Below, one piece after another: positions 10,424-52,459 of a DNA stretch of 64,000 bases. The stretch is from positions 1 to 64,000 of the IMG/VR virus record IMGVR_UViG_3300044645_002359. One strand, given 5' to 3'. A program made the position numbers and the translations under genes. Position 1 is the stretch's first letter. Each line of letters begins with the position of its first letter. Below the pieces are notes generated by a model. That model did not search any database. It saw only the letters and a program-made list of their open reading frames with translations, and was not told the origin of the DNA.

Positions 10424-11262
10424 ATGCAGAGTTCTTTTTCAGCTAAAGCTATTGAGACAGTTAACCTTCTCCTGGGTAGTTCAGGCACACTTGACTACAC
10501 ACGTTGTGTAAGACCGGATGGTACCGCCTATGGGACTTCAGGTTCCTGTCGCAAGGGTACGCAGCAAAATAAAGCTGAAATTCGGAAGCTAAAAGCCAAG
10601 ATAAAAGAAGCTGAGGGGGTTATAGAGTACCAGCTGAAAGCAGGCGACCCGGCATACGCAAGTCTCTGGGCCAAGCGATTAGAGGAACACAAAAGAAAAC
10701 TAACCGAACTTGAGGGCAATGAGCCGGTCAAGCCAACTACAAAATCAAACGCTCCAGTCTTAACTGGCGTTGAAAAAAGCGCCTTGGTTAACTATATGAC
10801 CGGGGGCTCCATGGAAACTGGGAATTTGCTGGATATAAACTGGAGGCTCAGGGGATTAGGTGAAGGGCTGATCTCATCTACCGAAAACGAACAAATCAAG
10901 AATCTGGACTCAGCCTTGAAGAAACTACCCGGTAATTCGTCTGGGCAGGAGTTTTATCGGGGTGTATCTTTGGAGCCTGAGCAAGCCAGGAATCTCTTAA
11001 CTTCACTGAAAAGTCAAGGGTCGTGGAAAGACCCAGGTTTTCTTCCTACTCGCGAGACAGAGAACAGGCAGAAGAGTTTGCAGGTCAAGGGGAAGTTTCC
11101 GTCATTTTCATTACGCGGTCCAAAAACTTACGAGATGCCGGTAAATACGCTCCCGAAGAATTTTCGGATCAGCAAGAATCAATCCTCCCCCGGAATACCC
11201 CTTTAAGGGTTACAAACATTAAAAAAGACGGCGAGCTAATTGTGGTCCATCTGGCTGATTGA
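10424..11262 (+). CDS. DFTRC-family protein with C-terminal VIP2/Alt-like ADP-ribosyltransferase; single-base frameshift at 11038-11041
   Basis: YRGV...GFSSYS...DQQESILP once 10424..11206 and 11023..11262 are joined. Confidence 0.75.
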
Positions 11263-11350
11263 GCTTCCCATATCCACAATTAAACTTCCTTGGCTCAGCG
11301 GTTTCAACCTTTGGTGCAAGGGGGTAAGTTTAATTGAGCTCCCTTAACAG

Positions 11351-12127
11351 ATGCAAAGCTCCTTTTCAGTCGATGCCCTAAACAAAGTCGACCGGCTCTT
11401 GGCTGGTGCGGATGCTTTAGACTTCACTCGTTGCGTAAGGCCCAATGGCACAGCCTAGGGGACAGCAGGTCAATGCCGTAAAGGAGTAGAACGTCCAGAA
11501 GAAGAGACGGAGAGGCAAGATCGTGAGAAAAAACAAGTTCTGTATCTGATTGACAAGCGTTACTCCGATGACCCGGAAAGAAAGGCCAAGGTTCTTAACA
11601 GCTTCGAGGCCAACGGAAACTTAGCCGACAAGATTCGAGAGTTGGATGACGGGAACACCGTAATACTTTCAAACCACATGAACATTCATCTGGAGAGAAA
11701 ACTCAATGACATTGACAGTGTATCCCTGACATTAGTAGGCAGAGCAGACCAAAAAGTAAAAGAGATCAGCTTCACTGCCAACGGGGAATTGGATTACGGA
11801 AGCATAGAAGATCCAAAGGATCGCGTCAAAGCTGCTTTAACTGTACGAAAGTTATTTACGATGCTAACAAAGGCTTTGAACCCAGGGGATATGCTCTCTT
11901 GCTACGCCTGGGATGAAGACGGAAGAGAGCAACAAAGAGAAAAAGCCTACAAGAAAATTGGCTTTCAGCCCCAGGCTGACGGTAGTTTGTTAGGAGAAGT
12001 TCAATCGGGTGGCGGTGTTGCCTTCCGAGCTGAACCTGCATTCTCAGAAAGCAAAGGAAGCTGGGTAGACTGGTATGTGGCCCTATTCGGTGAGCTGCCC
12101 CGGAGAAGCTCCTCCAAGGCTCTCTGA
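11351..12127 (+). CDS. DFTRC-family protein with in-frame TAG at 11456
   Basis: MQSSFS...DFTRCVRPNGTA*GTAGQCRKG; open to 12127. Confidence 0.7.
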
Positions 12128-12255
12128 GGCTGCTTAGGCGAAGGGCTACCCTTCCGTGCCCCTCGGCTGAGACCCCGTCCGAGGCTCCTCTAGCCCCCTT
12201 AGAGCGGTGGTGCGTCTTTGCTGAGCAAAGGGTCGGTCTTTACTACGTAAAGGGT

Positions 12256-12318
12256 CGGTAAGCCGCCCTGAACCGTTCGGTTCCCACCCTTGGCCTTCGG
12301 TCACAAAGGTAGTATAGT
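12256..12318 (+). promoter_or_regulatory. Class I repeated promoter
   Basis: cggtaagccg; TTGGCC-17-TATAGT; ATG 12325. Confidence 0.8.
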
Positions 12319-12324
12319 ATTTGT

Positions 12325-12621
12325 ATGAAAAGCGACCTCACTCCCGTCCACTTCGCTGCTATTGAAGAAACGCTAACCCTGATCGGTAGTGGGTTCGAAC
12401 CACGCAGTCTCATGAACAAACTTCTGTTCGATCTTTTTCCGAACGAAGACCAAAAGTTCTTGGATTACTGGGCTGGTTACAGGTTCGTTCACCTAAAAGG
12501 AACTGCTTTTCTGTCGAGTCGAGAATGGATCCTGACAGACATGGTTCGCGAAGTTCTTCAAGGCACTGCCCAAAAGTGGTTTGAAGATTGGCTTCAAGAG
12601 CACGGTCAGGTAGCTGCCTGA
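12325..12621 (+). CDS. Hypothetical protein (leaderless)
   Basis: ATG 6 nt after -10. Confidence 0.7.
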   Translation: MKSDLTPVHFAAIEETLTLIGSGFEPRSLMNKLLFDLFPNEDQKFLDYWAGYRFVHLKGTAFLSSREWILTDMVREVLQGTAQKWFEDWLQEHGQVAA

Positions 12622-12630
12622 TCACAACAA

Positions 12631-12703
12631 ACCGGCATAGTTCAGCGGACAGAACGCGAGCCTTCTAAGCTTGATGTCGGGGGTTCAAATCCCTCTGCCG
12701 GTG
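12631..12703 (+). tRNA. tRNA-Arg(TCT)
   Basis: cgagc-cttctaa-gcttg. Confidence 0.9.
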
Positions 12704-12720
12704 TTTGTCTACTTAATCAA

Positions 12721-13059
12721 ATGTTTCAAGATCGCGAATCCTACCTGCGCGAAGTTGCCGAATGGCAAGCAACCTACGCCCAGCTGAGTGAGCGCCAGCG
12801 CAACCGCAAACTAGAAATCAAGGGCACACAGCGGAACGCCAGTGAAATCCCCGTGTTTTCTTACCTCTGGCCCGTTGAACAGCAAGAGGCGTGGAACCGT
12901 GAATACGGTCGCTCCTACGGCTCCTACACGAGCCGACATTCCGCCTTGCAGCTCACCGTCAACGACGTAGCCCTTCAGGCCCAAGCAATGCTTCGAGCTC
13001 GCTCTGCCATGAAGGCTGAAGCCGGTCGCCAAACAGCCTTGCTTCCCGCTGTTGTCTGA
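12721..13059 (+). CDS. Hypothetical protein
   Basis: ORF track. Confidence 0.7.
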   Translation: MFQDRESYLREVAEWQATYAQLSERQRNRKLEIKGTQRNASEIPVFSYLWPVEQQEAWNREYGRSYGSYTSRHSALQLTVNDVALQAQAMLRARSAMKAEAGRQTALLPAVV

Positions 13060-13073
13060 ACCCTTCGGAGGGG

Positions 13074-13136
13074 CGGTGAACCGAACGAACCGGTTCGGTT
13101 CGCAGCCTTGTTTTCGCCTCGCGAAAACGCTATGAT
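13074..13136 (+). promoter_or_regulatory. Class I repeated promoter
   Basis: cggtgaaccg; TTGTTT-17-TATGAT; ATG 13143. Confidence 0.85.
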
Positions 13137-13142
13137 TATTGT

Positions 13143-13337
13143 ATGAAAACAGCCTACCGAGTCGACGTCATCACTGGAACCAACAAGCGCAACCGGCGTG
13201 AAGTTGTCAATCGAGACGGATTTACCGTTTTCAGTGAAGCCCAGCGTTGGCGAGATTCGGTAGCTCGTGAAAATCCGCAAGCGTTGGTTGTAGTTACCGC
13301 ATACGCTTCTCCAGAGAGCCTACTAATTAGGCTCTGA
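13143..13337 (+). CDS. Hypothetical protein (leaderless)
   Basis: ATG 6 nt after -10. Confidence 0.7.
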   Translation: MKTAYRVDVITGTNKRNRREVVNRDGFTVFSEAQRWRDSVARENPQALVVVTAYASPESLLIRL

Positions 13338-13357
13338 CAGGAACCTCTCAGAAAACA

Positions 13358-13639
13358 ATGAAATCGAAAACCTATTCATTCGCAAAACAACCTGGCCGCA
13401 AGGTTTCTCTTTACGAGGTCGAATGCCTTGAGGATAGGGTGAACACCTTGGAGTCTTGCCTAGAGCACTCAGAACGGCTGAGGAAAGTAGAAAACCTGAG
13501 TGCCGATAACTTTGAGCACTTTCTCATCGAGAATGAGCCCCTGGTTGCGTTCACACCTGAAGGAGAGTCCTTCTTTCCTTGCACCTCCTCGATCTCAAAG
13601 TCAGGAAACGGTGTAGGAAAGTTCGCCCGTCAGTGTTGA
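13358..13639 (+). CDS. Hypothetical protein
   Basis: Tiled ORF. Confidence 0.6.
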   Translation: MKSKTYSFAKQPGRKVSLYEVECLEDRVNTLESCLEHSERLRKVENLSADNFEHFLIENEPLVAFTPEGESFFPCTSSISKSGNGVGKFARQC

Positions 13640-13646
13640 CGGCCAC

Positions 13647-13719
13647 GCTCCTTTAGCTATCTGGTGAAAGCAGCAAACTCATAATTTGCCTCAGACGTGT
13701 TCGATCCACGTAAGGAGCA
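13647..13719 (+). tRNA. tRNA-Ile2/Met(CAT)
   Basis: gcaaa-ctcataa-tttgc. Confidence 0.85.
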
Positions 13720-14102
13720 TTCTAAAACAACGGAGTTACAAATGGATTATAACGATCTCTTAATCGAGATTTTAAACATGACACCGGAACAACGCACCCA
13801 GAAGGTGAAAGTTGCTGATGGCGACCACGGAATGGGTTTCTCTGAATCTGATTGTACAGACATCCGACGGCTTGAAATCTTAAACTGGTGCGGCCCGGCG
13901 CTGTTTCTTAACTAACTTTGATACCAATGCTAACACGAGAGCAAGAAACGTCAGTTATGCGTTTCTACGACGAACTTTCCCTTGATCATAGAGAATCTGT
14001 AAACTTCTTTGTTAACATGGTTTCCAGACTAACTGACTTTGAAGCCATCGAGATTGACACAACCAATAATAAAGTTCACTTAAAGAAACTTTGACTCCAT
14101 AA

Positions 14103-14176
14103 GCCTTGTTAGCTCAGCTGGATAGAGCACATCTTTCCTAAAGATGAGGTCGCAGGTTCAATTCCTGTACAGGGTG
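14103..14176 (+). tRNA. tRNA-Arg(CCT)
   Basis: catct-ttcctaa-agatg. Confidence 0.9.
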
Positions 14177-14237
14177 CTTTTCACAGGTAGGAACACAAAG
14201 GGGGTAGACTCCTCACACAACAAATCACTGAATCAAA

Positions 14238-14600
14238 ATGGAAAAAACAAAGAAACTGGTTAAAGAATACAAGTTGGACCCTGAAGAAACCAGGTACCTT
14301 CGGCCTTTGGAAGAGGACCTTGAAGACCTTCCCACAGACTTAAGTGAACTTGTAAGCCACATTAATTCTCTCATAGATGAAGGTTTTACGACCTTAGACG
14401 TAGACATCTCTGGATGGGAGGGGTCCGGTACAGCTTATCTTTCCTATTTCAAAGAAAGAGAGGAAGCTGACGCAGAATTTCAGGCACGACTGAAAGTTGA
14501 ACAAGAAAGGGAAGAAATAGCAGAAAGACGGAGGGTGACTATTGCGGGACTATCCCAGGAGCAAAGAGAGGCTTTGGGCATTAGTCAATACGCTTCTTAG
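14238..14600 (+). CDS. Hypothetical protein, C-terminal LSQEQREALGI
   Basis: ORF track. Confidence 0.7.
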   Translation: MEKTKKLVKEYKLDPEETRYLRPLEEDLEDLPTDLSELVSHINSLIDEGFTTLDVDISGWEGSGTAYLSYFKEREEADAEFQARLKVEQEREEIAERRRVTIAGLSQEQREALGISQYAS

Positions 14601-14630
14601 AGTTCTATTGAAAACAAAAACAAAGGCAAA

Positions 14631-14998
14631 ATGACGAAACTCAAAAGACTGACTGTGTATGACTACAAAATGCAGTCTAAAAAGAGCAATACACCGATGA
14701 TGCTACTTATGTTTTCAGTGGGGAAATTTCAGCAGTTATTGCGTATCTTCAAGATATCTTAAACGAGGGTTTCACCCACATGGATACAGAAAAGTGGGTT
14801 GAGGAGGAGTACGGCCATGGGTATGCAATGTGTGAAACTAAATATTACAAAGTTAGAGAGGAGACTGACGGAGAATATGAAAAACGGTGTGAAAACCACC
14901 GAAAACAAAAGGAAGCGGAAAAAGTTAAGGCGGAAGCAAGGAGGGTAGCAATGGAAGCATTGACCCTTGAGCAAAGGGGCGCACTTGGGATTCGTTGA
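14631..14998 (+). CDS. Hypothetical paralog of 14238; frameshift in A-run 14689-14693
   Basis: One extra A gives ...ILNEGFTHMDTEKW...LTLEQRGALGIR. Confidence 0.6.
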
Positions 14999-15116
14999 CT
15001 TCGACTTCCGATGGCGTAATAACCGAACCTTTTTGTACGGTAATCCGAACCCACACCCGAAAGTAAACGACCTCTAATAGCACCAACACCCTCCAGCCCC
15101 AAACCCTAAGCAAACC

Positions 15117-15575
15117 ATGCCAAGCCCCAAACAACCACAATCCGGCGAAGAAAAAGCTCTTCGCAAGCAGCAACGTCTGGAAAAAGAAGCTGAATTAAAG
15201 GCCGCCGTTATCCAGACTCAAAAGAAGGAGATGGAGAATTACTTCCAGGGTTTACCTCGTCTTATCCTTAATTTGCTTTCAGAACTTGATAAAGAGGTTA
15301 TTGACTATACCTTAAAACAACCGGAATCCAATAAATTCGAACTTACCACCCATAATTCAAACTTCGGCCTCTCAGATAATAGCCTTAATTTTACGGTATC
15401 TCAAGATGACTACTCTTACTCTGACTACGTTAATCTGAAATACAATATCGATAATGCCTTCTCAGTGATTGAGTCCATTAGACGCTCTCGTCTTGAAGAA
15501 GAAGAAAAACACCGTAAACGGCAAGCTGCCCTTGCAAAACTTGACCCCGAAGACCGTAAACTTCTAGGGCTTTGA
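15117..15575 (+). CDS. Hypothetical protein, C-terminal ALAKLDPEDRKLLGL
   Basis: ORF track. Confidence 0.7.
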   Translation: MPSPKQPQSGEEKALRKQQRLEKEAELKAAVIQTQKKEMENYFQGLPRLILNLLSELDKEVIDYTLKQPESNKFELTTHNSNFGLSDNSLNFTVSQDDYSYSDYVNLKYNIDNAFSVIESIRRSRLEEEEKHRKRQAALAKLDPEDRKLLGL

Positions 15576-16162
15576 TTGCCTTTGAGAAGCAAAGACTACT
15601 ATTCATGGCCAACCAATCAACCCAAATGAAGCCCGAATTTCGCATCCGAGAACGCCACTATGGCAGCGAATCTATACCTTATCGTACAACCTTTTTCTAC
15701 TGTGAGAAAAAATTTCTATGGTTCTGGATACCAGTGTTTAAGATAGATGTCGGTAAAGGCAGAGACGTAATCCGAGGTTTCGGGTCCCTGGAAAAGCCCA
15801 AAAGGCAATAAGTGACTATTGCGAATACACGAAGTTTCACTACCCCTGCTAAAACAATGACCGAACCCCCAATCAAAAACTGCTCTACATGCGGCCACAG
15901 CACCCCCGGTGAGTATAGCTCGCAAGTAGGCAAAGATCGATATCGCTTTTGCAATCTTTGCAGTGAGTCTTGTTCTTTGGTCAATAACCCAGCACTATCG
16001 GGCTCGCATTGGGCTTGCTTTAGACACAGCCAATGGGTACCTCAACCAACCTCGCCACCGAAACCCTCAACTATTTGGCAACAAATCGGTAAGGCAATCC
16101 TTGCCAAACTTACGCCGGGTTACCCAAAGTGAAGGGAGGTTCGGTCTTTGCTACGCAAAGGA

Positions 16163-16225
16163 CGGTTACCCGAACCGACCCGTTCGGTTCCCCCCCTTGT
16201 TTCTGCACTGCAGAAACGGTATAGT
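16163..16225 (+). promoter_or_regulatory. Class I repeated promoter
   Basis: cggttacccg; TTGTTT-17-TATAGT; ATG 16232. Confidence 0.85.
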
Positions 16226-16231
16226 ATATGT

Positions 16232-16624
16232 ATGGAAAGCACTACCTCTCGCCGTGGAATCCTCTGGTTGTCTGACCCAGACCAAGAGTTTCGGGTGTGC
16301 ACAACCTTTGCCAACGCTGCACGCCACTTGCATGTGACTTTGCAGTTTGGGATTTATGAGAACGAGATTCCTGCCGGGATTTTGGGTCACACTTTCTCTG
16401 TTCGGGCTACAAGCATCTGTTACAATACCCGAATTCAAGCTTTGCGCGTAGAACTGCCTACCGAACTCCAAGACGTTTGTCAAAACGAAAACCCTCATAT
16501 GACAATCTCGATGATTCCTGGAGTTCGCCCCGTTGAGTCAAACGAGATGTTGCAGGGTTCCTATCATTCCGAGTCAGTAGACTTTGAAATGTCTCTCATC
16601 TGCGAATTTTCACCCTTCAACTAA
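16232..16624 (+). CDS. 2H phosphoesterase (tRNA ligase CPD-like)
   Basis: Two HxT motifs: LHVTLQFG and PHMTIS. Confidence 0.7.
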   Translation: MESTTSRRGILWLSDPDQEFRVCTTFANAARHLHVTLQFGIYENEIPAGILGHTFSVRATSICYNTRIQALRVELPTELQDVCQNENPHMTISMIPGVRPVESNEMLQGSYHSESVDFEMSLICEFSPFN

Positions 16625-17480: not shown

Positions 17481-17552
17481 ACCCACGTAGCACAGCGGTA
17501 GTGCAGCCGTTTCGTAAGCGGCAGGTCGCTGGTTCGAGTCCAGTCGTGGTTT
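17481..17552 (+). tRNA. tRNA-Thr(CGT)
   Basis: gccgt-ttcgtaa-gcggc. Confidence 0.85.
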
Positions 17553-20756: not shown

Positions 20757-20762
20757 TATTCC

Positions 20763-24419: not shown

Positions 24420-24660
24420 GGTCTAAGGGCAAAGCCCTACCATACGGCTCAAAACTGGGTGTAGCTCGGGCAGACGTTGCGGTGGACAAGGGGGCAGTAC
24501 CCTTTAGCTCCACTTTCCCTTTACGGGGCTAATCTAGTTTCGACACCGTGAAAGTGTCACTTGAGTGAAAGCCGCTTGCATAAGCACAAAATAGACGCTA
24601 ACAAAATCGTCAAATTCGAGAGGACTGCCGTAGCCGTTTGAGCTATAGCATTCTGACTCA
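24420..24660 (+). ncRNA. ssrA: Circularly permuted (two-piece) tmRNA, tag (A)NKIVKFERTAVAV
   Basis: T arm and acceptor tagctcca end at 24512, upstream of 5' ggggctaatctagtttcgac at 24525; tag frame 24597-24641. Confidence 0.85.
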
Positions 24661-24664
24661 TTGC

Positions 24665-24683
24665 GGGGGCTTCGGCCCCCCTT
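24665..24683 (+). terminator. GC hairpin with TTCG loop after tmRNA
   Basis: gggggc-ttcg-gccccc-tt. Confidence 0.7.
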
Positions 24684-24701
24684 AAACCAATTAGAAACAA
24701 A

Positions 24702-25094
24702 ATGTTGCAAATTACCTACGAGTCAGAACTAGACTCTGACTACAGGAAAGAACTTGATTCTTGCACAAGCGTTCAAGATTTGAAAGCCTTGATTGACAAG
24801 TACAAGGCAGTCTCCCCCGACTTAAAGGATGTTGTAATTGAGAGCGATGCCGATTACAATGAGTTCAAGAAAGGCTTAGCCGTGGAACGAACTGGGCAAT
24901 ATGCTGGTGACGAATGGTGTGAAAGATTTGGCTCTTTGGCCCTTCCTGTCTACATGCTTTACGCTTCACTTTTAGCCGGAGAGTATGGGGCACCTTGGGG
25001 AGTTGCTTACTTTAGAATGTGCGCGGAAGGGGCTGTCCCAGGTGTAGACCCTGAGCTTGCGAAACAAGAAATTTTCTCATTTCTGCCCAGTTAA
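24702..25094 (+). CDS. Hypothetical protein
   Basis: ORF track. Confidence 0.7.
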   Translation: MLQITYESELDSDYRKELDSCTSVQDLKALIDKYKAVSPDLKDVVIESDADYNEFKKGLAVERTGQYAGDEWCERFGSLALPVYMLYASLLAGEYGAPWGVAYFRMCAEGAVPGVDPELAKQEIFSFLPS

Positions 25095-26667: not shown

Positions 26668-27042
26668 ATGTATTTCTACGCTATCTCCCGCCGGGACCTT
26701 CCAACGCACCAACAAGCTATTCAGTCGGCCCATGCTCAGCTGGAGTATTGCCGTTTACGGGGAGTTCCTGAGGGCGAGCATCCCTCTTTCGTTTGGTTAA
26801 CGGTGGAGGAGAGGTGGCACCTGATAGATTTACTCTTATCATTAGAGTATCACTCTATACCGGTAGTTAAGTTCCACGACCCAGACTACAAGGGCTATGA
26901 CCCTAGCGCAATCGCTTGTTTGGTTAATGAGGAAAAACGATACTTGTTGTCTCATCTTCCCCTCTGGAAGTGTGAAGCTCCTCGAAAGAAAAGTGGGCTG
27001 TTGAGCTGGTTTATCAGAAGAGGGGTAAGTTTAACTGAGTGA
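26668..27042 (+). CDS. Peptidyl-tRNA hydrolase PTH2-like protein
   Basis: RRDL...QAIQSAHA...F.DPD...SAIA...LPLW. Confidence 0.6.
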   Translation: MYFYAISRRDLPTHQQAIQSAHAQLEYCRLRGVPEGEHPSFVWLTVEERWHLIDLLLSLEYHSIPVVKFHDPDYKGYDPSAIACLVNEEKRYLLSHLPLWKCEAPRKKSGLLSWFIRRGVSLTE

Positions 27043-27052: not shown

Positions 27053-28645
27053 ATGCAAGGTTCCTTTTCTGAACAGTCACTGAAGCAGTACGAAGAGTTA
27101 ATCGGAGAAATAGCTTCTGTAAACTTTTCCGAATTAAATTCAGATGTGTACGATTTCACACGTTGCGTTCGCGCGGACGGTACTGTCTACGGTTCACGAG
27201 GAAAGTGCCGCAAGGGACGTGAGGCTGCCGCAGGCGCTGGCCCTTCTCAAGCCCCGAGGAAGAGTACGGCAGCTCGAATGGCTGCTGCCGCTGAAAAGTT
27301 AGAAAGTCCTAAGCAAACTCCGGCCAAAGTTAAGGCACCGGTTCCCGCTCCCGTAGCAACTCCAGCAGTTAGAACCGTTAAAAAGCCCAGGGCAGCCCCA
27401 CTCACCGCTGAGGGAAAGGCAGAGAAGAAGTGGCTCGCACAGAAAGATAAATTAGACGCGATAAAGGCAGAACACGCCAAGATGATTGCTGAGGTTGAAG
27501 CGCAGGGGCACAAAGTATACGCCACCGGTACGGGGGCCAGTATGCTTCATAGGCTGGCTAAAGAGAGGGGAATTGCTACACCGGCTCAGCTATCCAGTAT
27601 GCGAATAAAACTCTTCCAACAAGAGCCTGAGCGCATCAAAAAAGAAAGGTTGGCGGAAGAAGAGAAGAAAAGACTGTCGGAAATTGCTGGAACCACTAGA
27701 GAACAGCGCAAGGGGATGGTCCGTGAGCGAATTGAGGAGCTGAAGAAGAGCAAATATCTAGACACGTTGAAGGACGTTAATAACAACGTCGAAATGATGA
27801 AGAAGTGGATAGAAACAGACCCTTCCATGGATACCCTGAAAAACCGTGTTGCTTTGACGGCAATGCGGTCTTTCCGTGCGCAAATGGTGAGAGAAGCAAG
27901 GCTTAAGCGAGAAGAAAAGTACAGGAGCCTTGACGAATTCCTCAAAGAGTCGCCCAAGTATAACAGAACCCCTGGTTCCAGGGAGCCTATGAAAGCTAAG
28001 TATGATGACAGCGAAAGGGAGCAAAAAAGACTTGAAAAGATTTATGAAGCACAAGGGTTTAACGCTAGACCAGAACTTGTAAGGTCAAGATCTGACCTTG
28101 AGAAAAGGAAGGACATCCTAAGAGAGCCTGACGGAAGGCCACTAATTCTCTATCGAGGGGTATCGGAAGAAAGCTTAGCAAGACAGTTCCAAGGCTCTGG
28201 TCCAGACGGAGACAGACACTACCCTGGTCGGGGGGTGTATGGAAACGGGAGTTACGCTGCTTCTGCGGGGGGAAATCCGGGTTCTTGGAACACGGACGGA
28301 AACTTTGACAAGACTGCACAAAGAACAGCTTCTTCGTATACGAGTAGTGGTGGAAACCCTAAGGATAAAGTTACAGCCTTCGCTCTTCGTTCGGACGCAA
28401 ATGTGGTTCAGTTCGAAGGGACAAATCCTGCGCTAAGGGACTTAGAATACAGAAAATGGTCAAGAGAAATTAGGAAACAGGCGTCAGAGAAATTCGGGGC
28501 TGAGTTTAACGATCAGGGCGAAGCTGCCGCTGCTATGGGAATCCACGCCTATAGAGTTCCAATGAGTTCTGACGAAGACTACTGGATTATTCTAAATCGC
28601 GGTGCTGTCATCGCTGCACAAGATTCTCAACTACCAGACTTATGA
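27053..28645 (+). CDS. DFTRC-family protein with coiled coil and C-terminal ART-like domain
   Basis: YDFTRCVRADGTVYGSRGKCRKG; LYRGV...GVYGNGSYAA. Confidence 0.75.
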   Translation: MQGSFSEQSLKQYEELIGEIASVNFSELNSDVYDFTRCVRADGTVYGSRGKCRKGREAAAGAGPSQAPRKSTAARMAAAAEKLESPKQTPAKVKAPVPAPVATPAVRTVKKPRAAPLTAEGKAEKKWLAQKDKLDAIKAEHAKMIAEVEAQGHKVYATGTGASMLHRLAKERGIATPAQLSSMRIKLFQQEPERIKKERLAEEEKKRLSEIAGTTREQRKGMVRERIEELKKSKYLDTLKDVNNNVEMMKKWIETDPSMDTLKNRVALTAMRSFRAQMVREARLKREEKYRSLDEFLKESPKYNRTPGSREPMKAKYDDSEREQKRLEKIYEAQGFNARPELVRSRSDLEKRKDILREPDGRPLILYRGVSEESLARQFQGSGPDGDRHYPGRGVYGNGSYAASAGGNPGSWNTDGNFDKTAQRTASSYTSSGGNPKDKVTAFALRSDANVVQFEGTNPALRDLEYRKWSREIRKQASEKFGAEFNDQGEAAAAMGIHAYRVPMSSDEDYWIILNRGAVIAAQDSQLPDL

Positions 28646-44759: not shown

Positions 44760-44975
44760 CGTCCTGTCAGAACTCTCTACTGAAGACAAGAATCTTTACA
44801 CGGCACTTTTGAGTGTCGTCACAGTTGTAATTCTGCTCCTGCTGGGAATGACCTCTTGTGCTATCACGGAAAGTCGAGAGCGGATTAATAGAACAATCCT
44901 AGATTGCAGAAGTACAGCTGTTAATAGAGTCGAGTCAACAGATACACTCGACTTGATTTGTGGGAAACTGCCTCA

Positions 44976-45716
44976 GTGACACACTCCCGATATGCCATTA
45001 TCGGAGACGTTCACTCTCAAGCATTCCCCTTGAAGAATGCCCTAGACTACTGTTACGATAACAACTTAACTCCAATTATTCTTGGCGACCTTTTTGATTC
45101 GCAGTGTCAGGTTTCAGAGTCAGTTTCTGTTTACAACCTTGTAAGAAAGTCTCAGGGCGATCTTGGAGCGATTGTACTTCGCTCGAACCACCAGCACCTC
45201 CTTGAGAAACTTATCAAAAAAGAAGAGGTTTCCCTTAAAAAAGACTTGTGTAAAACAGTCAGAGAGTTTCAAGAGGCAGGAATTTGTCTAACTGAGGTAG
45301 GGCAGTGGCTTGAAACTTTCCCTTACGTTTTCGCCTTCCGAGACTCTCGAGGACAAGAGTACAGAGTCGCTCACGCGGAAATTCCTGCTTCAGTAAAGGT
45401 ACCGAACTTCGATCAAACCTGGATGTATCTTCACCCCACGGAACAAGAGCTGCGATGCCTGCTTTGGGGCGCCGATTACTCCCTGCCCAACCGTGACCGG
45501 TTCTGGTGGCTCGGGAAGCCCGAGAGGGACTGGGTAGCCGTCGCGGGCCATTACCACAAGGTTGTCAACGATGGCCGCTCTCTCGTCCTCGACGCTGGGT
45601 GTGGAGGGAAGACCCGCGCCTGGTACGACAAGCGTCCCCCTGCGTTACTTCTCTACGACGTTGAGGTCCAAAGCCTGATTGAATTCCCGGCTTTTGATAA
45701 CTCGGTCGTAGGGTAA
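44976..45716 (+). CDS. Calcineurin-like metallophosphoesterase (paralog A)
   Basis: GDVHSQ...LGDLFD...SNHQ...AH...GHYH. Confidence 0.85.
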   Translation: MTHSRYAIIGDVHSQAFPLKNALDYCYDNNLTPIILGDLFDSQCQVSESVSVYNLVRKSQGDLGAIVLRSNHQHLLEKLIKKEEVSLKKDLCKTVREFQEAGICLTEVGQWLETFPYVFAFRDSRGQEYRVAHAEIPASVKVPNFDQTWMYLHPTEQELRCLLWGADYSLPNRDRFWWLGKPERDWVAVAGHYHKVVNDGRSLVLDAGCGGKTRAWYDKRPPALLLYDVEVQSLIEFPAFDNSVVG

Positions 45717-45741
45717 GTTTCATCAGCGCAACTTCTTGATA

Positions 45742-46386
45742 ATGAATCCTGGGTCAATCTCCGAAAGCACTCGCGAACTTGTATTTGACTTTACTCGGTG
45801 CGTCAAAGCCGACGGGAGCTTTTATGGTACGTCAGGTAAGTGCCGAAAAGGCTCCGAAGTTGATGCCAAGGAAAAACCCTATAAAGTAGGAGTAACTTGG
45901 GGCAAGTACAATATTCCAACCCCAGGCCACGCTCGCGTTGTCAAGAACCTGCTCAAGAAATCTCAGGTTGTGAACGTGATTATGAGCGGAGCGAAGACCA
46001 ACGTCGACTGGAACTTGCGAAATCTAATGTTTCGCCGAGTGCTCAAGCAACAAGGGGTGGACGTTTCTCGTGTGAAATTCGTTCACGCCTCAAATACCTT
46101 TGAAGCTCTGACAAAGATCATTGATTCTCAAGGTTCGAAAAATGTTCTCCTTGCACTTGGCGAAGATCGTAAGAACTACCTAGATGGACTGACCAAAAAG
46201 TTAGGGATCGGAGGGCAGTTAATCCCTCGTGCCGCTGGGTCGGAAAGTTCAACTATGATGCGTGGGTTGATTGACTCCAAGGACTTCAAAAAGTTAGGAG
46301 AAATATACGGCAATGATCCTTATTTGGTGAAACTGGCTAGAATTATCCGGAACGAAGAGACGAAGAGGGACGGTAAACCGAACTGA
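45742..46386 (+). CDS. DFTRC-family protein with HIGH-type nucleotidyltransferase domain
   Basis: FDFTRCVKADGSFYGTSGKCRKG; GKYNIPTPGHARV...GEDR...SST.MR. Confidence 0.75.
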   Translation: MNPGSISESTRELVFDFTRCVKADGSFYGTSGKCRKGSEVDAKEKPYKVGVTWGKYNIPTPGHARVVKNLLKKSQVVNVIMSGAKTNVDWNLRNLMFRRVLKQQGVDVSRVKFVHASNTFEALTKIIDSQGSKNVLLALGEDRKNYLDGLTKKLGIGGQLIPRAAGSESSTMMRGLIDSKDFKKLGEIYGNDPYLVKLARIIRNEETKRDGKPN

Positions 46387-46433
46387 AGCCTTCGGCTTCC
46401 ACCCTTGTTTTCGCTGAGCGAAAGCGGTATGAT
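46371..46433 (+). promoter_or_regulatory. Class I repeated promoter
   Basis: cggtaaaccg; TTGTTT-17-TATGAT; ATG 46440. Confidence 0.85.
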
Positions 46434-46439
46434 TAATGT

Positions 46440-46763
46440 ATGAAAAGGAAAGTTAAAAAGAGAATCCAAAAACGGCTTCAGAAAAAAGTCTTTGATTTCG
46501 TACACCCGGTAGATCTGAACAAGGTTGTACCTCAAATTGAGAAAAACAAAAGGGCTATTCAGGCTCTTAGGGCTTTACACCTTGCTTACGATTCCGATCG
46601 ACGGAGCGGTAGTGAGACCTACGGGTACTCTAGTTTAGAGAGTATCGAATCTAGCTTAGAGTACATCTGCGATCGCTGGGGCTGTGCATTCCGCTTAACT
46701 TGGCTTCTCGGAGTACCTGAAGCAGTGAGCAACCTGAAACAATTCAACTCATCTTCAAAATGA
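46440..46763 (+). CDS. Hypothetical protein (leaderless)
   Basis: ATG 6 nt after -10. Confidence 0.65.
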   Translation: MKRKVKKRIQKRLQKKVFDFVHPVDLNKVVPQIEKNKRAIQALRALHLAYDSDRRSGSETYGYSSLESIESSLEYICDRWGCAFRLTWLLGVPEAVSNLKQFNSSSK

Positions 46764-47065
46764 CCCTCAAGAATCTGAAAACTTTCCAGTCTGAAATCGA
46801 AAATCTTCTGAAGTTCGTGAAAAGAACTATTCAGTCTGATGACCGAGCTTGTGAAGATGACACCCTTCCTGGAATTCTGGTGACGGTTGGCGCCGGTGAG
46901 AACGATGACGGTTCTTTCTCTTGGAGTTACCAGACCGGTGACAACAGCTATACTGGAGGGGCATACGGCTTTCCCCACTGGGCCGTAATCAGCCTGCATC
47001 GCCGGAGCAACTGCCGCGCTCTTGCTCAGGATGCTGTGAACGAAATTCTCTACAGCCTAGTTTGA
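46760..47065 (+). CDS. Conserved phage hypothetical protein
   Basis: WSYQTGDNSYTGGAYG.PHWAV. Confidence 0.75.
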   Translation: MTLKNLKTFQSEIENLLKFVKRTIQSDDRACEDDTLPGILVTVGAGENDDGSFSWSYQTGDNSYTGGAYGFPHWAVISLHRRSNCRALAQDAVNEILYSLV

Positions 47066-47100
47066 TACAGCGAATTCAACCCACTTAAACAACCGAAACC

Positions 47101-47481
47101 ATGCCTTGCAGTGACCCTTTCCCCTATGATCTCCCGGAGCCCCCTCCAAGGGAGCACACTCAACAAAAACTAAAATCAAACTCCTCTTACCAGAGAGCGA
47201 AGAATCTGGGACTTTACGGAGTCGAAACCACCGACGAAGAACTCCCTGGCAGATTGATGGAAATTGCGTGCCAGGCGTTTCAAGAGTTGGATAATGCCCT
47301 CTCTGTGCTTATGTTTCCTGGGTTCGTGTACGAGTGTAAATTTCCAGAAAACCACGAATGGTGGATCAACCATCAAGCGCGTGATGCAAAACGACTCGAA
47401 AGAGTTCTAGAGAATGCCCTAGCTAAACTAAGTGCTGAAGAGCAAGAGGTTCTCAAGGCTTTCTTCGGAGAGCAAAAATGA
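47101..47481 (+). CDS. Hypothetical protein, C-terminal ALAKLSAEE
   Basis: MPCSD...WW..HQ..DAKR. Confidence 0.7.
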   Translation: MPCSDPFPYDLPEPPPREHTQQKLKSNSSYQRAKNLGLYGVETTDEELPGRLMEIACQAFQELDNALSVLMFPGFVYECKFPENHEWWINHQARDAKRLERVLENALAKLSAEEQEVLKAFFGEQK

Positions 47482-48011
47482 ATACCATTGAACGAATTGC
47501 GGAGAACCTGGCTATATCTCTCTTAGAGTTTACGGGGAATTACTCAGGGTCTCCTTACAAAGAGAAGGCGGAGAAGGCTCTGGCAGAGTACAATATATGG
47601 GTGAGTAAAGGTTTGCAGTACGCTGCGGCGACCGGGTCTTTGAAGGACTTGGAGAAAGACATTTACTGGTTTCTCTGTGAGAACGAAGACAGCAGAACCG
47701 TTCAGTCTGCCGAGGTTGCAAGGATGGTTGAAGCCTTCCTAATCAGGCAGTCTGCTAAAGTAGACGCTGGCTCTCAAACACATGGAAAAACTTCCAGTGT
47801 AAGGGTGGATCCAGACAAAGTCATGCGATCTTTTCAAGAGGCCCTAGAGTCAGGACTCTCGCAGGAAAGTGCGGTAGGGCAAGCAATCCTGTCGGCAACT
47901 CAGCAAATGTGGAGCCAATCTGATCTAGATGCCAATAGCGCTTCGATTCTATGCAGCTTTTCGGACCTGTGGAAAGAACTTTCCCTAAGCAAACCCTCTG
48001 AACAAACCTGA
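47478..48011 (+). CDS. Hypothetical protein
   Basis: Tiled ORF. Confidence 0.65.
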   Translation: MNTIERIAENLAISLLEFTGNYSGSPYKEKAEKALAEYNIWVSKGLQYAAATGSLKDLEKDIYWFLCENEDSRTVQSAEVARMVEAFLIRQSAKVDAGSQTHGKTSSVRVDPDKVMRSFQEALESGLSQESAVGQAILSATQQMWSQSDLDANSASILCSFSDLWKELSLSKPSEQT

Positions 48012-48014
48012 ACA

Positions 48015-48236
48015 ATGTCTTACCGCTCCCGTCGAAATTCAACCACCATGTCATCTTCCTCATCTTCTGGATGAGGATTTTCCGGATTGCTTACCGTCCT
48101 CTTCATCGGATTGAAACTCACCGGCCACATCACCTGGCCTTGGATTTGGGTTCTTTCCCCGTTGTGGATTTCCGCCCTGATCGCCATTGCTTTTATCGTC
48201 CTGTTCCTAGTTTTGGCTGTCCTCCTTAATAAGTGA
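48015..48236 (+). pseudogene. Small phage membrane protein with in-frame TGA at 48072
   Basis: SSSSG*GFSGLLTVLFIGLKLTGHITWPWIWVLSPLWI. Confidence 0.65.
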
Positions 48237-48706
48237 CCCTTAGCACAACCAACATCCGGAGAATCACCCCCGAGATCGCAGCCAAACTTGACATGCGACC
48301 GGGAGAGTGGTTTCGCAACTTGTTGCTGTGGGATTGCTATAAGGCAAGGCCCTTGGCTTTTAATCGTTGCACAGACCATCAGGAAGTTGTGGCCAAAGGG
48401 CTGTTGCCTGACGAGTTGTTGATTGGCGATTGCATTGACTTGGACTCTTCCTAGTTACCAACATGTTTGAAAATTTAAAACAAAAATTCAGCGAGTGGCT
48501 CGAAGACACTACCCACTGGTTTAAAATCGGTGAGTCAACTATGTGGAGAGCTCGGAACAAACATTAAATTTAACAACCTGACACAAATGACAATACTACT
48601 CTCTTTTCTCCTAGTGGCAGCTACACTGGCTGTGAATCTTTCTATCTGGAGAGCTGCTGAGACTAAAGACGATCTCAAAAAGAATAAAACTAGTTTTTAG
48701 GGGGGA

Positions 48707-48780
48707 CGGTTAACCGACTTTCTGCGGGGCGGAAAGGTTCGGTTCCCCCCCTTGTTTCTACTGTGCAGAAACGCTATGAT
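48707..48780 (+). promoter_or_regulatory. Class I repeated promoter
   Basis: TTGTTT-17-TATGAT; ATG 48787 opens uORF MNMTRA*. Confidence 0.8.
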
Positions 48781-48815
48781 TATTGCATGAACATGACACG
48801 AGCCTAATCTACAAA

Positions 48816-49940
48816 ATGGCAAACATCGAACGCAAACTTGCATCTGTCCGCAAAGTAACGGACATTCGCCCCATCCCCGACGCTGACGCCATCGAATGCG
48901 CCATTGTAGGTGGTGGTTGGCCCGTGGTAGTGAAAAAGGGAGAATTTCAGGTTGGCGACCTCGCCATCTACTTCGAGATTGATTCCTGGATTCCTCACGA
49001 ACTTGCCCCATTCCTCTCCAAGGGGAAGAAACCAAGGGAGTATAATGGAGTGAAGGGGGAGAGGCTGAAAACTGTCAGGCTCCGTGGTCAAGTCTCCCAG
49101 GGTCTCCTGCTCCGCTTCTCGGACATCTCTCCAAGCTTCTACGTTGTCTCGCTAGCCGAACCTTACGGGGGGAGGGAATTTCTCCGAGTTGATCAGTGCG
49201 TGTGGGAGGAAGGTGAGGACTTCACTCTAGAGTTCGGAATTCAGAAATGGGAAGCTCCTGTCCCAGCTTGCTTGGCTGGTCAAGTTCGCGGGAACTTTCC
49301 TAGCTTCCTCGTGAAGACGGACCAGGAACGTTGTCAGAATGTTGTGGAGGAAATCTTTGAGCGCCATAAGGGTGAAACCTACGAAGTTACTATCAAACTT
49401 GATGGGTCTTCCTGCACGGTCTACGTCAAGGACGGGGAAGTTGGGGTGTGCAGCCGTAACCTTGACCTCAAGGAAACCGAAGGCAATAGTTTCTGGAAGG
49501 CTGCTAGGGATCAGGGCATTATCGATGCTATGCTTGCATACAATGGGAAGACTGGTCACAGTATTGCCTTGCAGTCGGAAACCCTTGGAGAAGGCATCCA
49601 GGGCAACCAGGAAGGAATCAAGGGACAACGCCTATTCCTGTTTGACATCTTCGATATCGACAGCCAAACTTACATGAAGCCAGGGGCCAGAATGAACCTC
49701 TTGGACAAGTACCTAGTTCCATTAGGCGCTGATTTAACCCATACCCCTGTCCTACACCCCGCAATGTGTGTAACTGATAGTTCCGCCAACCTTGATGAGC
49801 TACTAGCGTACGCCGATGGCCCGTCCATGAACCCCAAAGTCAAACGCGAAGGCTTAGTATTCAAGTCCAATGACTCTGAGTTTTCCTTCAAGGCCATTAG
49901 TAATGAATGGCTCTTATCCAAGGGAAAGAAGGGTGGCTGA
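48816..49940 (+). CDS. RNA ligase, Rnl2/DRB0094 family
   Basis: RKLASVRKV...YFEIDS...SQGL...KTDQER...KLDGSS...EGLVFK...FKAISNEWL. Confidence 0.92.
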   Translation: MANIERKLASVRKVTDIRPIPDADAIECAIVGGGWPVVVKKGEFQVGDLAIYFEIDSWIPHELAPFLSKGKKPREYNGVKGERLKTVRLRGQVSQGLLLRFSDISPSFYVVSLAEPYGGREFLRVDQCVWEEGEDFTLEFGIQKWEAPVPACLAGQVRGNFPSFLVKTDQERCQNVVEEIFERHKGETYEVTIKLDGSSCTVYVKDGEVGVCSRNLDLKETEGNSFWKAARDQGIIDAMLAYNGKTGHSIALQSETLGEGIQGNQEGIKGQRLFLFDIFDIDSQTYMKPGARMNLLDKYLVPLGADLTHTPVLHPAMCVTDSSANLDELLAYADGPSMNPKVKREGLVFKSNDSEFSFKAISNEWLLSKGKKGG

Positions 49941-50912
49941 TGCCAGTGCCCAAAGGACCCGTTGGCTGAATATTTAAAGTTTATCCACTCCGAAAAATGC
50001 CCCCCCTAATCCGCTACGCAAACTGGCACATTCGCCGTTATAGGCAAAGAAATTCTACTCTGGAGCTAGCAATTATCTTTGCTTTTCATTGTTTGATTGC
50101 TTGTATTTCCTTGGCCGTAGGGGTCATGTCAACCCCTGTGAATCCCCTATTGGTGTCATGGGGCATCTCACTCCTTGCCGTTACCTGCTACATTCATCGC
50201 CCCATTCGCTACTACTGACCGTCCCGCAACCCTTCACCGAAACATCCGACCCTCAACTACAAAAAGGGTATACCACCCGTACTCACACACCGCAATGACT
50301 AAGCCCTTAGCCTACAACTACCCGCCCGGAACCACGCCGGAAGCAATCGAAGCCTTCCGCACCATGTGGGGACAAACCCCCGAAGATGACATTCGTTTGG
50401 GTTCAACCTTTGAGATTTTCCTGAAGGGTTATGTGTGCGGAAGAAATTTATCTAGGAATTTAGACCCTCAAGTAAGAGATAATGATAGTATACGAGATGA
50501 AATCAACGACTTGACTCAAAGGATTGAAGACTTGGAAAGATTCAAAGAAGCTACAGTGAGTTATGATTCCCATGGCAATTATGCCAGACATGTTGGTTGA
50601 TACTGTAATTAATTACCATGCAAACAAATAAACCACAACAACCATGATCGACACCATCCCGCCAACAACATTCGATACTCGAACAGATACCATTAGGTAT
50701 CCGGACGGCGTTGAAGAAACCTTAGTCCAATACCAAAAACGCAACCGCCAATTTGAATATATCCGGGGCCTGCAAAATGCTTTAGAAAGAATGAAGGTCC
50801 TATATCAGAACCCCGGCTGCCTTACCGAAGGGGAGTATAACGCAGCGAAGGACGCCATCCAAGGGCAATTTGACTATTGGGAAATGAATCTGTTTATCGA
50901 ATTCGGAGACAA

Positions 50913-51380
50913 ATGACCATTACCAAATTCTCAGGCCAATTCAGTTTCCTGTCAAACTTTTATGAGAGCGTTCTAGAATACGAGGGGATCAAATACCCCA
51001 CAGTCGAACACGCCTTTCAAGCAGCTAAGACTCAGGATCCCGAAGCTCGCCAGCAAATTGCAAATATGCAAAAGCCGAGCGAGGCCAAAGCTGCGGGAAA
51101 CCGTAACGGCATTATCAGGGACTTTGACCCCGTAGAGTGGGAACTTAGAAAAAACGGAGTCATGGAAGAGTTACTACGCATTAAATTTCAGAACCCAGAT
51201 CTAAAAAACCTCCTAGCACAAACAGGAAACGCAAAACTAATCGAAGGCAACACTTGGGGAGACACTTATTGGGGAGTTGATGTTGTGACCGGCGAGGGCG
51301 CTAACAAACTTGGTGTCATCCTTGAGGGGATTCGCAACGAGATTGCTGAGGCAATGGCAAAGAATAAGCGTCAATCTTGA
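50913..51380 (+). CDS. NADAR family protein
   Basis: FLSNFY...TVEHAFQAAK...KF.NP.L...LIEGNTWGDTYWG...G.NKLG. Confidence 0.9.
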   Translation: MTITKFSGQFSFLSNFYESVLEYEGIKYPTVEHAFQAAKTQDPEARQQIANMQKPSEAKAAGNRNGIIRDFDPVEWELRKNGVMEELLRIKFQNPDLKNLLAQTGNAKLIEGNTWGDTYWGVDVVTGEGANKLGVILEGIRNEIAEAMAKNKRQS

Positions 51381-51395
51381 ACATCCGCACAAACA

Positions 51396-51917
51396 ATGAC
51401 TGCACTCAACAAAACCGAAGGCGACCTATTAGCAATGGCTCGCGAGGGCCAGTTTGACATAATCGTTCACGGGGCAAACTGCTTCAACAAAATGGCTTCT
51501 GGAATTGCCGGGCAAATCAGCCGTGAACACCCTGAGGCTGCTGAAGCCGACCGCGCCACAGAGTCTGGTGACAGGGGCAAGCTTGGCAACTATACTATGG
51601 CTCACGTGCGAGAGATATGGTTGATACAACGTGCCTTCACGATCGTTAACGCTTACACTCAGTACACCTATGGGCGAGAAGGAGACTTGTTTGAGTACAA
51701 CGCCTTTGAAAAGTTTCTGGCAAATTTTGAGACTTTTCTGAGAAAAGTGTACGTGTTGGCGGGTGCCGACAAGAAAACCAGGGTTGGCTTCCCTTACATC
51801 GGTTGTGGCCTTGCAGGTGGAGACGAGCAAAGAATAGTAGAGATGATCGAAAACTTCTCTGTGTCTTGCCAAGACATTGCGGATGTCACTCTTGTTAGAT
51901 TTGTCCGAGATACATGA
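51396..51917 (+). CDS. Macrodomain ADP-ribosylhydrolase
   Basis: GDLL...IVHGANCFNKMASGIA...PYIGCGLAGGD. Confidence 0.9.
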   Translation: MTALNKTEGDLLAMAREGQFDIIVHGANCFNKMASGIAGQISREHPEAAEADRATESGDRGKLGNYTMAHVREIWLIQRAFTIVNAYTQYTYGREGDLFEYNAFEKFLANFETFLRKVYVLAGADKKTRVGFPYIGCGLAGGDEQRIVEMIENFSVSCQDIADVTLVRFVRDT

Positions 51918-52126
51918 ACTCACTACAATGGCTTAACGTTGCCAGTTGCTCTGCCCGCCGCTTATCAAGCCTTCGCTTCAGAGGTAGTTCCACATCGGAA
52001 ACTAAGAAGGGAGAGAAAGAAACTCTCGATATGGCGCTCGCCAAGGTTAATACCACTATCCTAAACCGTCTGAGGAAGCAACTCCCGAACCCTCAAGGGT
52101 AAAAGTAGTATAACTGCGGCTTCAAC

Positions 52127-52459
52127 ATGCAAGGTTCATTCTCTGAAGATTCTCTTAAAATCTTTCACAATTTGGCTTCACAGTCCCAAGGTTTAAGCTA
52201 TAGTGAGTCTAGGGAAGATTCGTATGACTTTACACGCTGTGTAAGACCAAATGGGACCAGCTTTGGAACCTCAGGGAAATGCACACCACCGAATCGCCAA
52301 GCGGCGCCAAGTAATCTTGTAGCGGAAGTTAACCGCGAGGAAGTAGAGGCTCGGCAGTTAATGTCCGGTGGCCGCAGAAACAGCAGGGCTATGCAGCGCC
52401 GCGCAAAAGAACTACTTGAGAGTGCTCGAAGAAAGAGGAGCGGCAAGCCGACGGCATGA
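52127..52459 (+). CDS. Short DFTRC-family protein
   Basis: MQGSFSE...YDFTRCVRPNGTSFGTSGKC. Confidence 0.8.
   Translation: MQGSFSEDSLKIFHNLASQSQGLSYSESREDSYDFTRCVRPNGTSFGTSGKCTPPNRQAAPSNLVAEVNREEVEARQLMSGGRRNSRAMQRRAKELLESARRKRSGKPTA

Follow-up and report, generated by a model that had tools for sequence, protein, structure and literature searches.

The stretch of DNA analyzed here, called the window, corresponds to the first 64 kb (positions 1 to 64,000) of the IMG/VR record IMGVR_UViG_3300044645_002359, a single viral record of 201,260 bp derived from a lake-water metagenome assembly, with a CheckV completeness of ~71%. The record represents a large myovirus-type (jumbo) phage. Thirty-five transfer RNA (tRNA) genes called by ARAGORN and a permuted transfer-messenger RNA (tmRNA) lie inside the window; tail sheath, portal, baseplate, tail fibre, tape measure and terminase genes are found beyond it, together with a gene in which a head protease of the Mu-I-like type is joined to a long, acidic, scaffold-like region. 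Five genes in the window, starting at positions 10424, 11351, 27053, 45742 and 52127, encode proteins marked at the N-terminus by the same short module (the tag), joined to different C-terminal regions (the cargoes). The closest cultured relative for this feature is the Synechococcus phage S-CBWM1; the remaining DNA matches of the record are weak, and involve cyanophages. The family genes, and two additional copies located elsewhere in the record, are the following.

10424..11206, + strand: gene 1, first frame; open reading frame (ORF) of 260 amino acids (aa), with the tag MQSSFS...DYTRCVRPDGTAYGTSGSCRKG, a helical linker, and the N-terminal half of an ADP-ribosyltransferase (ART) with the Arg motif FYRGV
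11023..11262, + strand: gene 1, -1 frame; C-terminal ART half, with SSYS as SxS motif and QQE as QxE motif
11351..12130, + strand: gene 2; tag with an in-frame TAG, then a cargo domain of unknown function
27053..28645, + strand: gene 3, 530 aa, intact; leader and tag, Ala/Pro/Lys-rich linker, long helices, C-terminal ART-like domain
45742..46386, + strand: gene 4, 214 aa, intact; short leader MNPGSISE, tag, HIGH-motif nucleotidyltransferase (PTPGH ... SSTMMR)
52127..52459, + strand: gene 5, 110 aa, intact; leader, tag and short basic tail, without an enzyme
Genome position 155402, outside the window: sixth copy, 76 aa; tag, short form
Genome 163591-164111, outside the window: decayed seventh copy, at the end of a 173-aa ORF for a coiled-coil protein ending ...QDFSESMGEGEFDFTRNGRKGKAC

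The original prediction, made from the letters of the window, had described the five genes as a family with a DFTRCV core and, in four cases, a MQ(S/G)SFS start. All five ORFs begin at the claimed positions and feature the common core D(F/Y)TRCV(R/K)x(D/N)G(T/S)x(Y/F)G(T/S)xGxC. DFTRCV is found in four genes, but 10424 reads DYTRCV; the MQ(S/G)SFS start is indeed present in 4 of the 5 genes, 45742 starting with MNPGSIS instead. Membership of the family holds for all five, but two (10424 and 11351) are broken, a circumstance previously overlooked. Search of the six-frame translation of the whole genome with a hidden Markov model (HMM) of the module, a check already proposed at that stage, recovered exactly six significant matches, with E values ranging from 1e-11 to 1e-30, and the likeness among the modules is thus not due to chance. 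Different codons are used at 64% of the identical core residues, which denotes that the peptide, not the DNA, has been conserved.

The consensus of the module is MxGSFSEEALxxFxxLA...FSExxxYDFTRCVRPDGSAYGTxGKCRKGTE. The leader (MxGxFSEEAL...) is predicted to be helical, and is often followed by a second (N/D)(F/Y)(S/A)E element. The core (YDFTRCVRxDGxxYGxxGxCRKG) is basic, measures ~25 aa, and is folded as a beta-hairpin in the AlphaFold model (predicted local distance difference test, pLDDT, ~80). A low-complexity linker rich in Lys, Ala and Pro usually comes next. Across 82–127 members no variation is seen at the two Cys, at two of the Gly and at the initial Met, and G3, F5, S6, D, F, T, R, V, R, Y, G, T, K, G are conserved in at least 90% of them. 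Three relatives (P0002, P0003, P0005) are polyprotein-like in their sequence, as a second module, which keeps (N)(F/Y)SE and the core but lacks the leader, is found inside the same ORF. Accordingly, the core is the unit, the leader belonging to the true N-terminus. In the orthologue of the decayed seventh copy (L042:3614-4456) the DFTRCV module is intact at the same place, at the end of a coiled-coil protein, hence the module can also occupy a C-terminal position. The seventh-copy gene overlaps the start of a kinase gene (ATGA).

The view of these proteins as one N-terminal domain combined with different cargoes has full support, and applies beyond the window. A profile made from six N-termini was scored against 1.84 billion representative proteins, and family clusters were counted at 50% identity. 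At E<=1e-3 it matches 795 protein clusters, of which 327 reach E<=1e-10; the module is located at residues 1–55 in almost every one of the best 150 of the 795 matches. The C-terminal regions fall into more than 20 groups with no detectable mutual similarity. In a Pfam survey of 127 representatives, ADPrib_exo_Tox was found in 8, ART in 6, Pkinase in 3, ABC1 and APH in 2 each; CTP_transf_like, DUF3626, DUF6496 and EAD11 were also matched, and most representatives had no match. Family copies, often arranged in tandem, reside nearly all in contigs of uncultured freshwater phages (2–14 copies each), in addition to S-CBWM1. In IMG/VR, 64 loci were identified, in contigs measuring up to 277 kb. Five related records which were checked contain 14, 10, 8, 6 and 2 matches, respectively, the first being a 277-kb, 98%-complete genome.

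Bacteria are almost devoid of such sequences. A single match, in a 4-kb contig of a metagenome-assembled genome, was obtained by scanning 185,579 prokaryotic genomes, one per species, and S-CBWM1 is the sole match among 50,697 GenBank phage records. That the tag is a known domain was considered and rejected, as no entry of Pfam, PHROGs, NCBIfam, PDB sequences and ESM Atlas covers the module; a full-text literature search for its motif retrieved unrelated strings only. To judge from these surveys, the family is large, undescribed and almost absent from bacterial genomes. The existence of the family, its modular design, its restriction to phages and the selection of the tag at the protein level are established by these data.

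The original prediction had placed a GGGTAA motif 29–31 nucleotides (nt) before the ATG of all five genes, and the motif is found there in each of them (at 29, 29, 30, 31 and 30 nt). The promoter-like elements of the window are listed below.

10395..10406, + strand: GGGTAAGTTTAA, 29 nt before the gene 1 ATG; directly after a tRNA-Met (10315-10386)
11322..11333, + strand: GGGTAAGTTTAA, 29 nt before the gene 2 ATG
27023..27034, + strand: GGGTAAGTTTAA, 30 nt before the gene 3 ATG; inside the 3' end of ORF 26668-27042
45711..45722, + strand: GGGTAAGTTTCA, 31 nt before the gene 4 ATG; one mismatch to GGGTAAGTTTAA
52097..52104, + strand: GGGTAAAA, 30 nt before the gene 5 ATG

The elements are made by GGG followed by a -10-like hexamer (TAAAAT, TATAAT, TAAAGT). 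The one at 27023 is read in another frame by the upstream ORF, and is therefore conserved as DNA, not as protein. The sequence GGGTA(A/T)A, often in the form GGGTAAAGTTTA, also precedes the head protease/scaffold gene, two tail-fibre genes (identified by PHROG matches), the tape measure gene, and a third large (1513-aa) gene beside the tail-fibre genes. It was found before about a dozen further genes of the structural region, at 121–190 kb, including those at 138455, 145908, 156222, 158597, 159522, 161394, 162160 and 162892. Twelve of 58 GGGTAAA sites are located 24–41 nt before an ORF start, versus a mean of 2.6% for permuted words (~8-fold enrichment); of the ~seven sites lying at this distance before an ORF in the first 64 kb, a region rich in tRNAs, five are those of the family genes. 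In distant contigs family genes have retained the element, as has the protease gene in orthologous loci; copy 6 is immediately preceded by a terminator-like site, made by a GC-rich hairpin and then a T-run. Because it also precedes head protease, tail-fibre and tape-measure genes, GGGTA(A/T)A looks like the late promoter class of this phage lineage, and the family genes of the window would then be late-promoter islands in a tRNA-rich region.

Judged from their reading frames, genes 10424 and 11351 are broken. The former had been described as an ART with R-S-QxE residues, and in part this stands: the two pieces, aligned separately to intact homologues of 306–349 aa, both match, and all three motifs align with those of intact ARTs, but the gene is split over two frames, so that R, SxS and QxE are not found in one reading frame. 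At the T-run 11038-11041, after ...WKDPGF and before SSYS..., homology moves to the -1 frame (frame change at 11038-11043); past ~11041 the frame of the start codon is unlike intact relatives. The first piece scores 20.3 bits (E 3.8e-4) to PF03496, under the 23.4 cut-off; intact relatives reach an E of 2.7e-15. Programmed frameshifting was discarded, as GGT-TTT-C is not a canonical X-XXY-YYZ heptamer, and the split occurs in no homologue. The sole hairpin nearby (11018-11034) is GC-rich, has a 5-bp stem and is located upstream of the break; with the T-run (11018-11041 as a whole) it resembles a terminator, but this is probably a coincidence, and the side is the wrong one for a frameshift stimulator.

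In gene 11351 the in-frame TAG (11456-11458) coincides with the conserved Y/F of the motif, a position occupied by Tyr or Phe in all other copies. A relative of 258 aa (P0020), 95% identical to 11351 over the cargo, has Tyr at this position, and no CUA anticodon was found among the 35 tRNAs called by ARAGORN. Amber suppression was rejected on these grounds, and a plain nonsense change is the simpler reading. An error in a single assembly was also rejected as the source of the breaks, since the sequence around both is unchanged in contigs of a second lake sample. The cargo of 11351, previously indicated as an unknown domain, is confirmed as such, having no match in Pfam, PHROGs, NCBIfam and ESM Atlas, and is shared by at least 12 other family members. 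The region 10394-12102, which includes both broken genes, is missing from a related lake population (run X4), where it is replaced by 15 nt; the left junction (10393/10394) lies one base before the GGGTAAG element. The absence of the region in this population points to birth-and-death turnover of the family genes.

The intact members carry the cargoes that had been anticipated. Gene 27053 encodes long helices, where a coiled coil had been predicted, followed by an ART-like domain. Structural matches of the latter are weak but consistent, with Z scores of 5–7 to ART folds (SAIP catalytic domain, diphtheria toxin, tankyrases, MbcT); no Pfam match was obtained for this domain. The C-terminal piece (292 aa, residues 239–530) features invariant R130, H151 and Y163 (numbering of the piece), and reads (E/Q/K)D(Y/F) at the usual ExE position. 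A relationship of 27053 to a pre-ejectosome chain of cyanophage A4 was discarded, since the match (Z 6.9) is too weak, and the A4 paper mentions no ART.

For 45742 the nucleotidyltransferase fold is confident. The AlphaFold2 model has a pLDDT of 85.7, and its best 50 PDB matches are all PPAT, NMNAT or NaMNAT enzymes, with E values down to 5.6e-6. PTPGH and SSTMMR correspond to the (H/T)xGH and ISxxxxR-type signatures of the PF01467 superfamily; the Pfam match of the window protein itself is weak (E 0.03). The orthologue in S-CBWM1 is gp39, annotated as NMN adenylyltransferase. Paralogous metallophosphatases (GDxHS...GDLFD...SNHQ) are encoded directly before 45742 (44958-45716) and just after 52127 (52704-53468); in S-CBWM1 the 'Ser/Thr phosphatase' gp40 adjoins gp39, hence the pairing of a phosphatase with a tagged nucleotidyltransferase is conserved.

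Gene 52127 ends with a basic tail and has no cargo, as originally proposed. Overlapping ORFs, found after this gene and after copy 6, were considered as frame-shifted cargoes and rejected, since they are unlike any family member; 52127 and copy 6 are thus viewed as genuine short forms. Cargo-less forms have been kept in relatives, as L046 (102 aa) and P0076 (106 aa). In S-CBWM1, gp165 is made by the tag and a tail.

Other proteins are headed by a second Cys motif, (K/R)(K/R)C(S/N/T)xGKxCxx(T/A)C(I/V)...C. It marks a protein kinase encoded outside the window (genome 164109-165386; L071:109-1386), is located ~65 residues into a 541-aa late protein (genome 156222-157844; L070:12222-13844), and heads S-CBWM1 gp162. 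In the case of S-CBWM1 gp161, located with gp162 at L073:2925-4791, the motif is encoded shortly before the annotated start, which looks to be set too far downstream. As kinases carry either this second motif or the DFTRCV tag, the two may be alternative tags serving one purpose.

A link to head proteins is provided by the cargo of 27053. Residues 202–523 match phrog_16619, a 'minor head protein' family (E 2.4e-22), whose cultured member is gp030 of cyanophage P-SS2; residues 327–523 are 37% identical to residues 1180–1379 of gp030 (E 5e-33). According to Pfam, gp030 contains Phage_Mu_F and Zeta_toxin domains, and with its C-terminal ART-like domain it is a polyvalent MuF effector protein. The same cargo is thus joined, in another cyanophage, to an established head-incorporation domain. 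In mass spectrometry of purified virions 96.5 peptides on average were assigned to P-SS2 ORF 030 (PMC2784084 Table 2). This 1500-aa virion protein (L088:3464-7960) is listed as 'major capsid protein' in the 2009 paper (PMC2784084). The MuF domain (PF04233) was found neither in the window proteins, nor in the 127 family representatives, nor in the 201-kb record, which is ~71% complete. The sharing of the promoter-like element with structural genes, the ART and nucleotidyltransferase folds among the cargoes, and the homology of one cargo to a MuF protein detected in virions are established.

The original prediction had also suggested that (F/Y/I)SE, recurring before the motif, may be a prohead protease site. 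Prohead proteases, such as T4 gp21 and phiKZ gp175, typically cleave many sites after Glu, both in themselves and in the scaffold. The 858-aa Mu-I-like protease/scaffold protein of this phage, whose protease domain takes up about the first 150 residues, contains six [FY][SA]E, that is 7.0 per 1000 aa versus 0.57 in the rest of the genome (12-fold enrichment, Fisher P 2e-5), 0.8 being expected from its own composition. The orthologues have retained most of these sites; one site reads LEFAEGE, to be compared with NFSEGE in the family, in which [FY][SA]E is present in most leaders. The enrichment in the protease/scaffold argues for the suggestion, but the motif is not universal in the family; a role of (F/Y/I)SE as cleavage site is plausible from the distribution of the motif.

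Taken as a whole, we assign a probability of about 55% to the reading in which the shared module is a capsid-loading tag borne by a variable set of effectors, by analogy with the T4 proteins that carry a capsid targeting sequence (CTS) and with MuF fusions, neither of which it resembles in sequence. Two new results, the presence of the element before head and tail genes, and the homology of the 27053 cargo to a gp030 domain, favour capsid delivery on sequence grounds. The shared promoter-like signal fits a tag that loads enzymes into the particle, without proving it. For the more specific proposal, that the DFTRCV hairpin and the MxGxFSE leader make a new, lineage-specific tag for capsid loading and ejection, by which freshwater cyanophage-like jumbo myoviruses fire up to 14 enzymes per genome into the host, we see an even chance.

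In the mechanism we envisage, the family would be a paralogous arsenal of late-expressed effectors, each made by leader, hairpin core, linker and a variable cargo or none, and sharing the GGGTA(A/T)A late-type promoters of head and tail genes. Docking of the proteins inside the assembling prohead, on scaffold, portal or DNA, would be the task of the shared module; where an F(S/A)E site exists, the leader may be trimmed by the Mu-I-like prohead protease. Like T4 Alt and the T4 internal proteins, the enzymes would exit the capsid together with the DNA, and work on the next host ahead of any phage gene expression. For ARTs and kinases that rewire the host, the moment of infection is the best time to act, which is why T4 Alt is produced late and enters the particle. 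Late timing, packaging, cleavage and injection of the family proteins are the steps which we infer.

The likeness to T4 CTS proteins (IPI–III, Alt) resides in a short N-terminal element set on otherwise unrelated proteins, an ART included. As a T4-like trait, the 82–127 members, with their unrelated C-termini, show little or no variation at M1, G3, F5, S6 and in the hairpin core. Late-type expression, suggested here by the upstream element, the delivery of enzymes with the DNA, assumed by analogy, and a candidate cleavage site ending in Glu (hydrophobic-x-E; the T4 gp21 site is L/I-x-E) would be further similarities. In contrast, the CTS has no sequence similarity to the family module, and the relationship is one of analogy, not homology. 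The family module is longer, having a leader and a 25-aa Cys-containing hairpin which would be retained by the mature protein; the protease is of the Mu-I-like rather than the gp21-like type, and up to 14 paralogues are found per genome.

Paralogous families with conserved N-terminal parts are known also among the Dar proteins of P1 (DarA, DarB, Hdf, Ddr) and the inner-body proteins of phiKZ and 201phi2-1, which are located inside the head, processed by the prohead protease, and ejected so that the infection is protected or primed. These proteins have no sequence relationship to the tag family, and have been proven by proteomics and structure, whereas the tag family is known from genes. In bacterial polymorphic toxins (Rhs, PAAR, MuF, LXG) a constant N-terminal delivery module is similarly combined with a variable C-terminal toxin, and rapid turnover and pseudogenes are common to both; but the tag family resides in lytic-type phage genomes, is almost absent from bacteria, and no immunity genes were noticed beside its members. 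MuF (PF04233)-fused polymorphic toxins and polyvalent proteins, such as P-SS2 gp030, have been described (PMC5512222). Here too one head-incorporation module is joined to interchangeable effectors (ARTs, kinases), and between the ART-like cargo of 27053 and the C-terminal domain of gp030 there is true homology. Family members differ in having no MuF domain, and in that effectors are usually separate small genes with their own promoter, rather than parts of a giant polypeptide.

Several observations weigh against capsid loading. The promoter has been assigned by sequence position only, and the family is known here from the genes of a lake-metagenome genome. The spacing between element and start is 14–15 nt at the protease, versus 29–31 nt in the family, and no sigma factor or sigma-70 gene was found in the 201-kb, ~71% complete record. 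Five of the six copies reside in a tRNA-rich, early-looking region, outside the head module. The peptides of P-SS2 were reported for gp030 as a whole, and are not mapped to the homologous domain. The recurrence of (F/Y/I)SE before the motif holds for 27053, 45742 and 52127, but not for 10424 (FSA) and 11351 (FSV), which have no [FY][SA]E at all; the second FSE is set at a fixed distance (2–5 residues) from the core, and may be part of the fold. Finally, the NMNAT-like cargo is conserved (S-CBWM1 gp39), and the need for it inside a capsid is not obvious.

The main rival is that the module works as an intracellular address, the basic hairpin and the linker tethering the enzymes to nucleic acid or to a host complex, such as RNA polymerase or the ribosome, late in the same infection. 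The strongly basic core (R, R/K, K, R, K), followed by linkers reminiscent of histone tails, is in keeping with this role, as is the location of most copies outside the head module; an ART consuming NAD and an NMNAT-like cargo making it could cooperate in the cell. It is hard to rationalize, however, why takeover enzymes should be made late and confined to a cell near lysis, and an address is also contradicted by the cargo that has a homologous domain in a MuF protein of virions, and by the [FY][SA]E shared by the family and the protease/scaffold protein; we regard this rival as unlikely.

The remaining two explanations are less likely than the address. A pro-domain or chaperone handle, which would keep toxic enzymes inactive or soluble until removed, with no role in targeting, could coexist with packaging, and would suit both the toxin-type folds of many cargoes (ARTs, kinases) and the possible cleavage motif beside the core. 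Yet a 25-aa hairpin set before long disordered linkers can hardly inhibit unrelated folds, the tag is also found without cargo (52127, and its 102- and 106-aa orthologues), and in the coiled-coil protein L042 it is at the C-terminal end; we consider a role of this kind improbable. That the shared 5' end is only a recombination cassette made by promoter and first codons, comparable to T4-type promoter-stem-loop cassettes, with no common protein function, would account for the identical 12-nt upstream element in three copies, the absence of 10394-12102 in a related population with the left junction one base before the element, and the variable gene content with some broken copies, but is largely excluded by the codon analysis (64% differences at identical residues of a coding part conserved as protein) and by internal second copies devoid of any promoter, the invariant Cys and Gly of 127 diverse members being similarly at odds with it.

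If the tag is a packaging signal, one 25-residue motif would mark the repertoire of injected effectors of an abundant freshwater phage clade. Such repertoire would correspond to the 795 clusters, most cargoes of which belong to no known family, and would be a large source of host-takeover or anti-defence enzymes. Capsid loading by this module would be a second, independent solution to the problem solved by the CTS in T4 and, in many phages, by MuF; the tag could serve as marker for hundreds of undescribed injected effectors, and as a portable handle for loading foreign proteins into capsids. Even if it does not direct packaging, a strongly conserved, phage-only module found on ARTs and kinases, and associated with late-type promoters, needs explaining. 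The family itself is undescribed, and the concept that it probably embodies is already known. S-CBWM1, growing on Synechococcus CBW1002, offers a cultured entry point.

Some features of the record are independent of the tag family. The tmRNA gene (24423-24732) is permuted, of the two-piece type, encodes the tag peptide ANKIVKFERTAVAV, and sits beside a near-complete set of tRNAs. No tRNA-Tyr was called by ARAGORN among the 35 tRNAs of the window. Two of those called have abnormal anticodon loops, made by four bases ('ttcg') at 2165-2237 and by two ('ac') at 4478-4549. Two 118-nt segments missed by ARAGORN, 58403-58520 and 59610-59727, match the tRNA model with scores of 41.5 and 50.1 bits, respectively; both feature a ~47-nt insert in the anticodon region, and may be intron-bearing tRNAs or tRNA-like elements. 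Outside the window, two genes resembling the terminase large subunit are arranged in tandem (genome 150948-152711 and 152730-154127), and encode proteins of 587 and 465 aa with near-identical N-termini.

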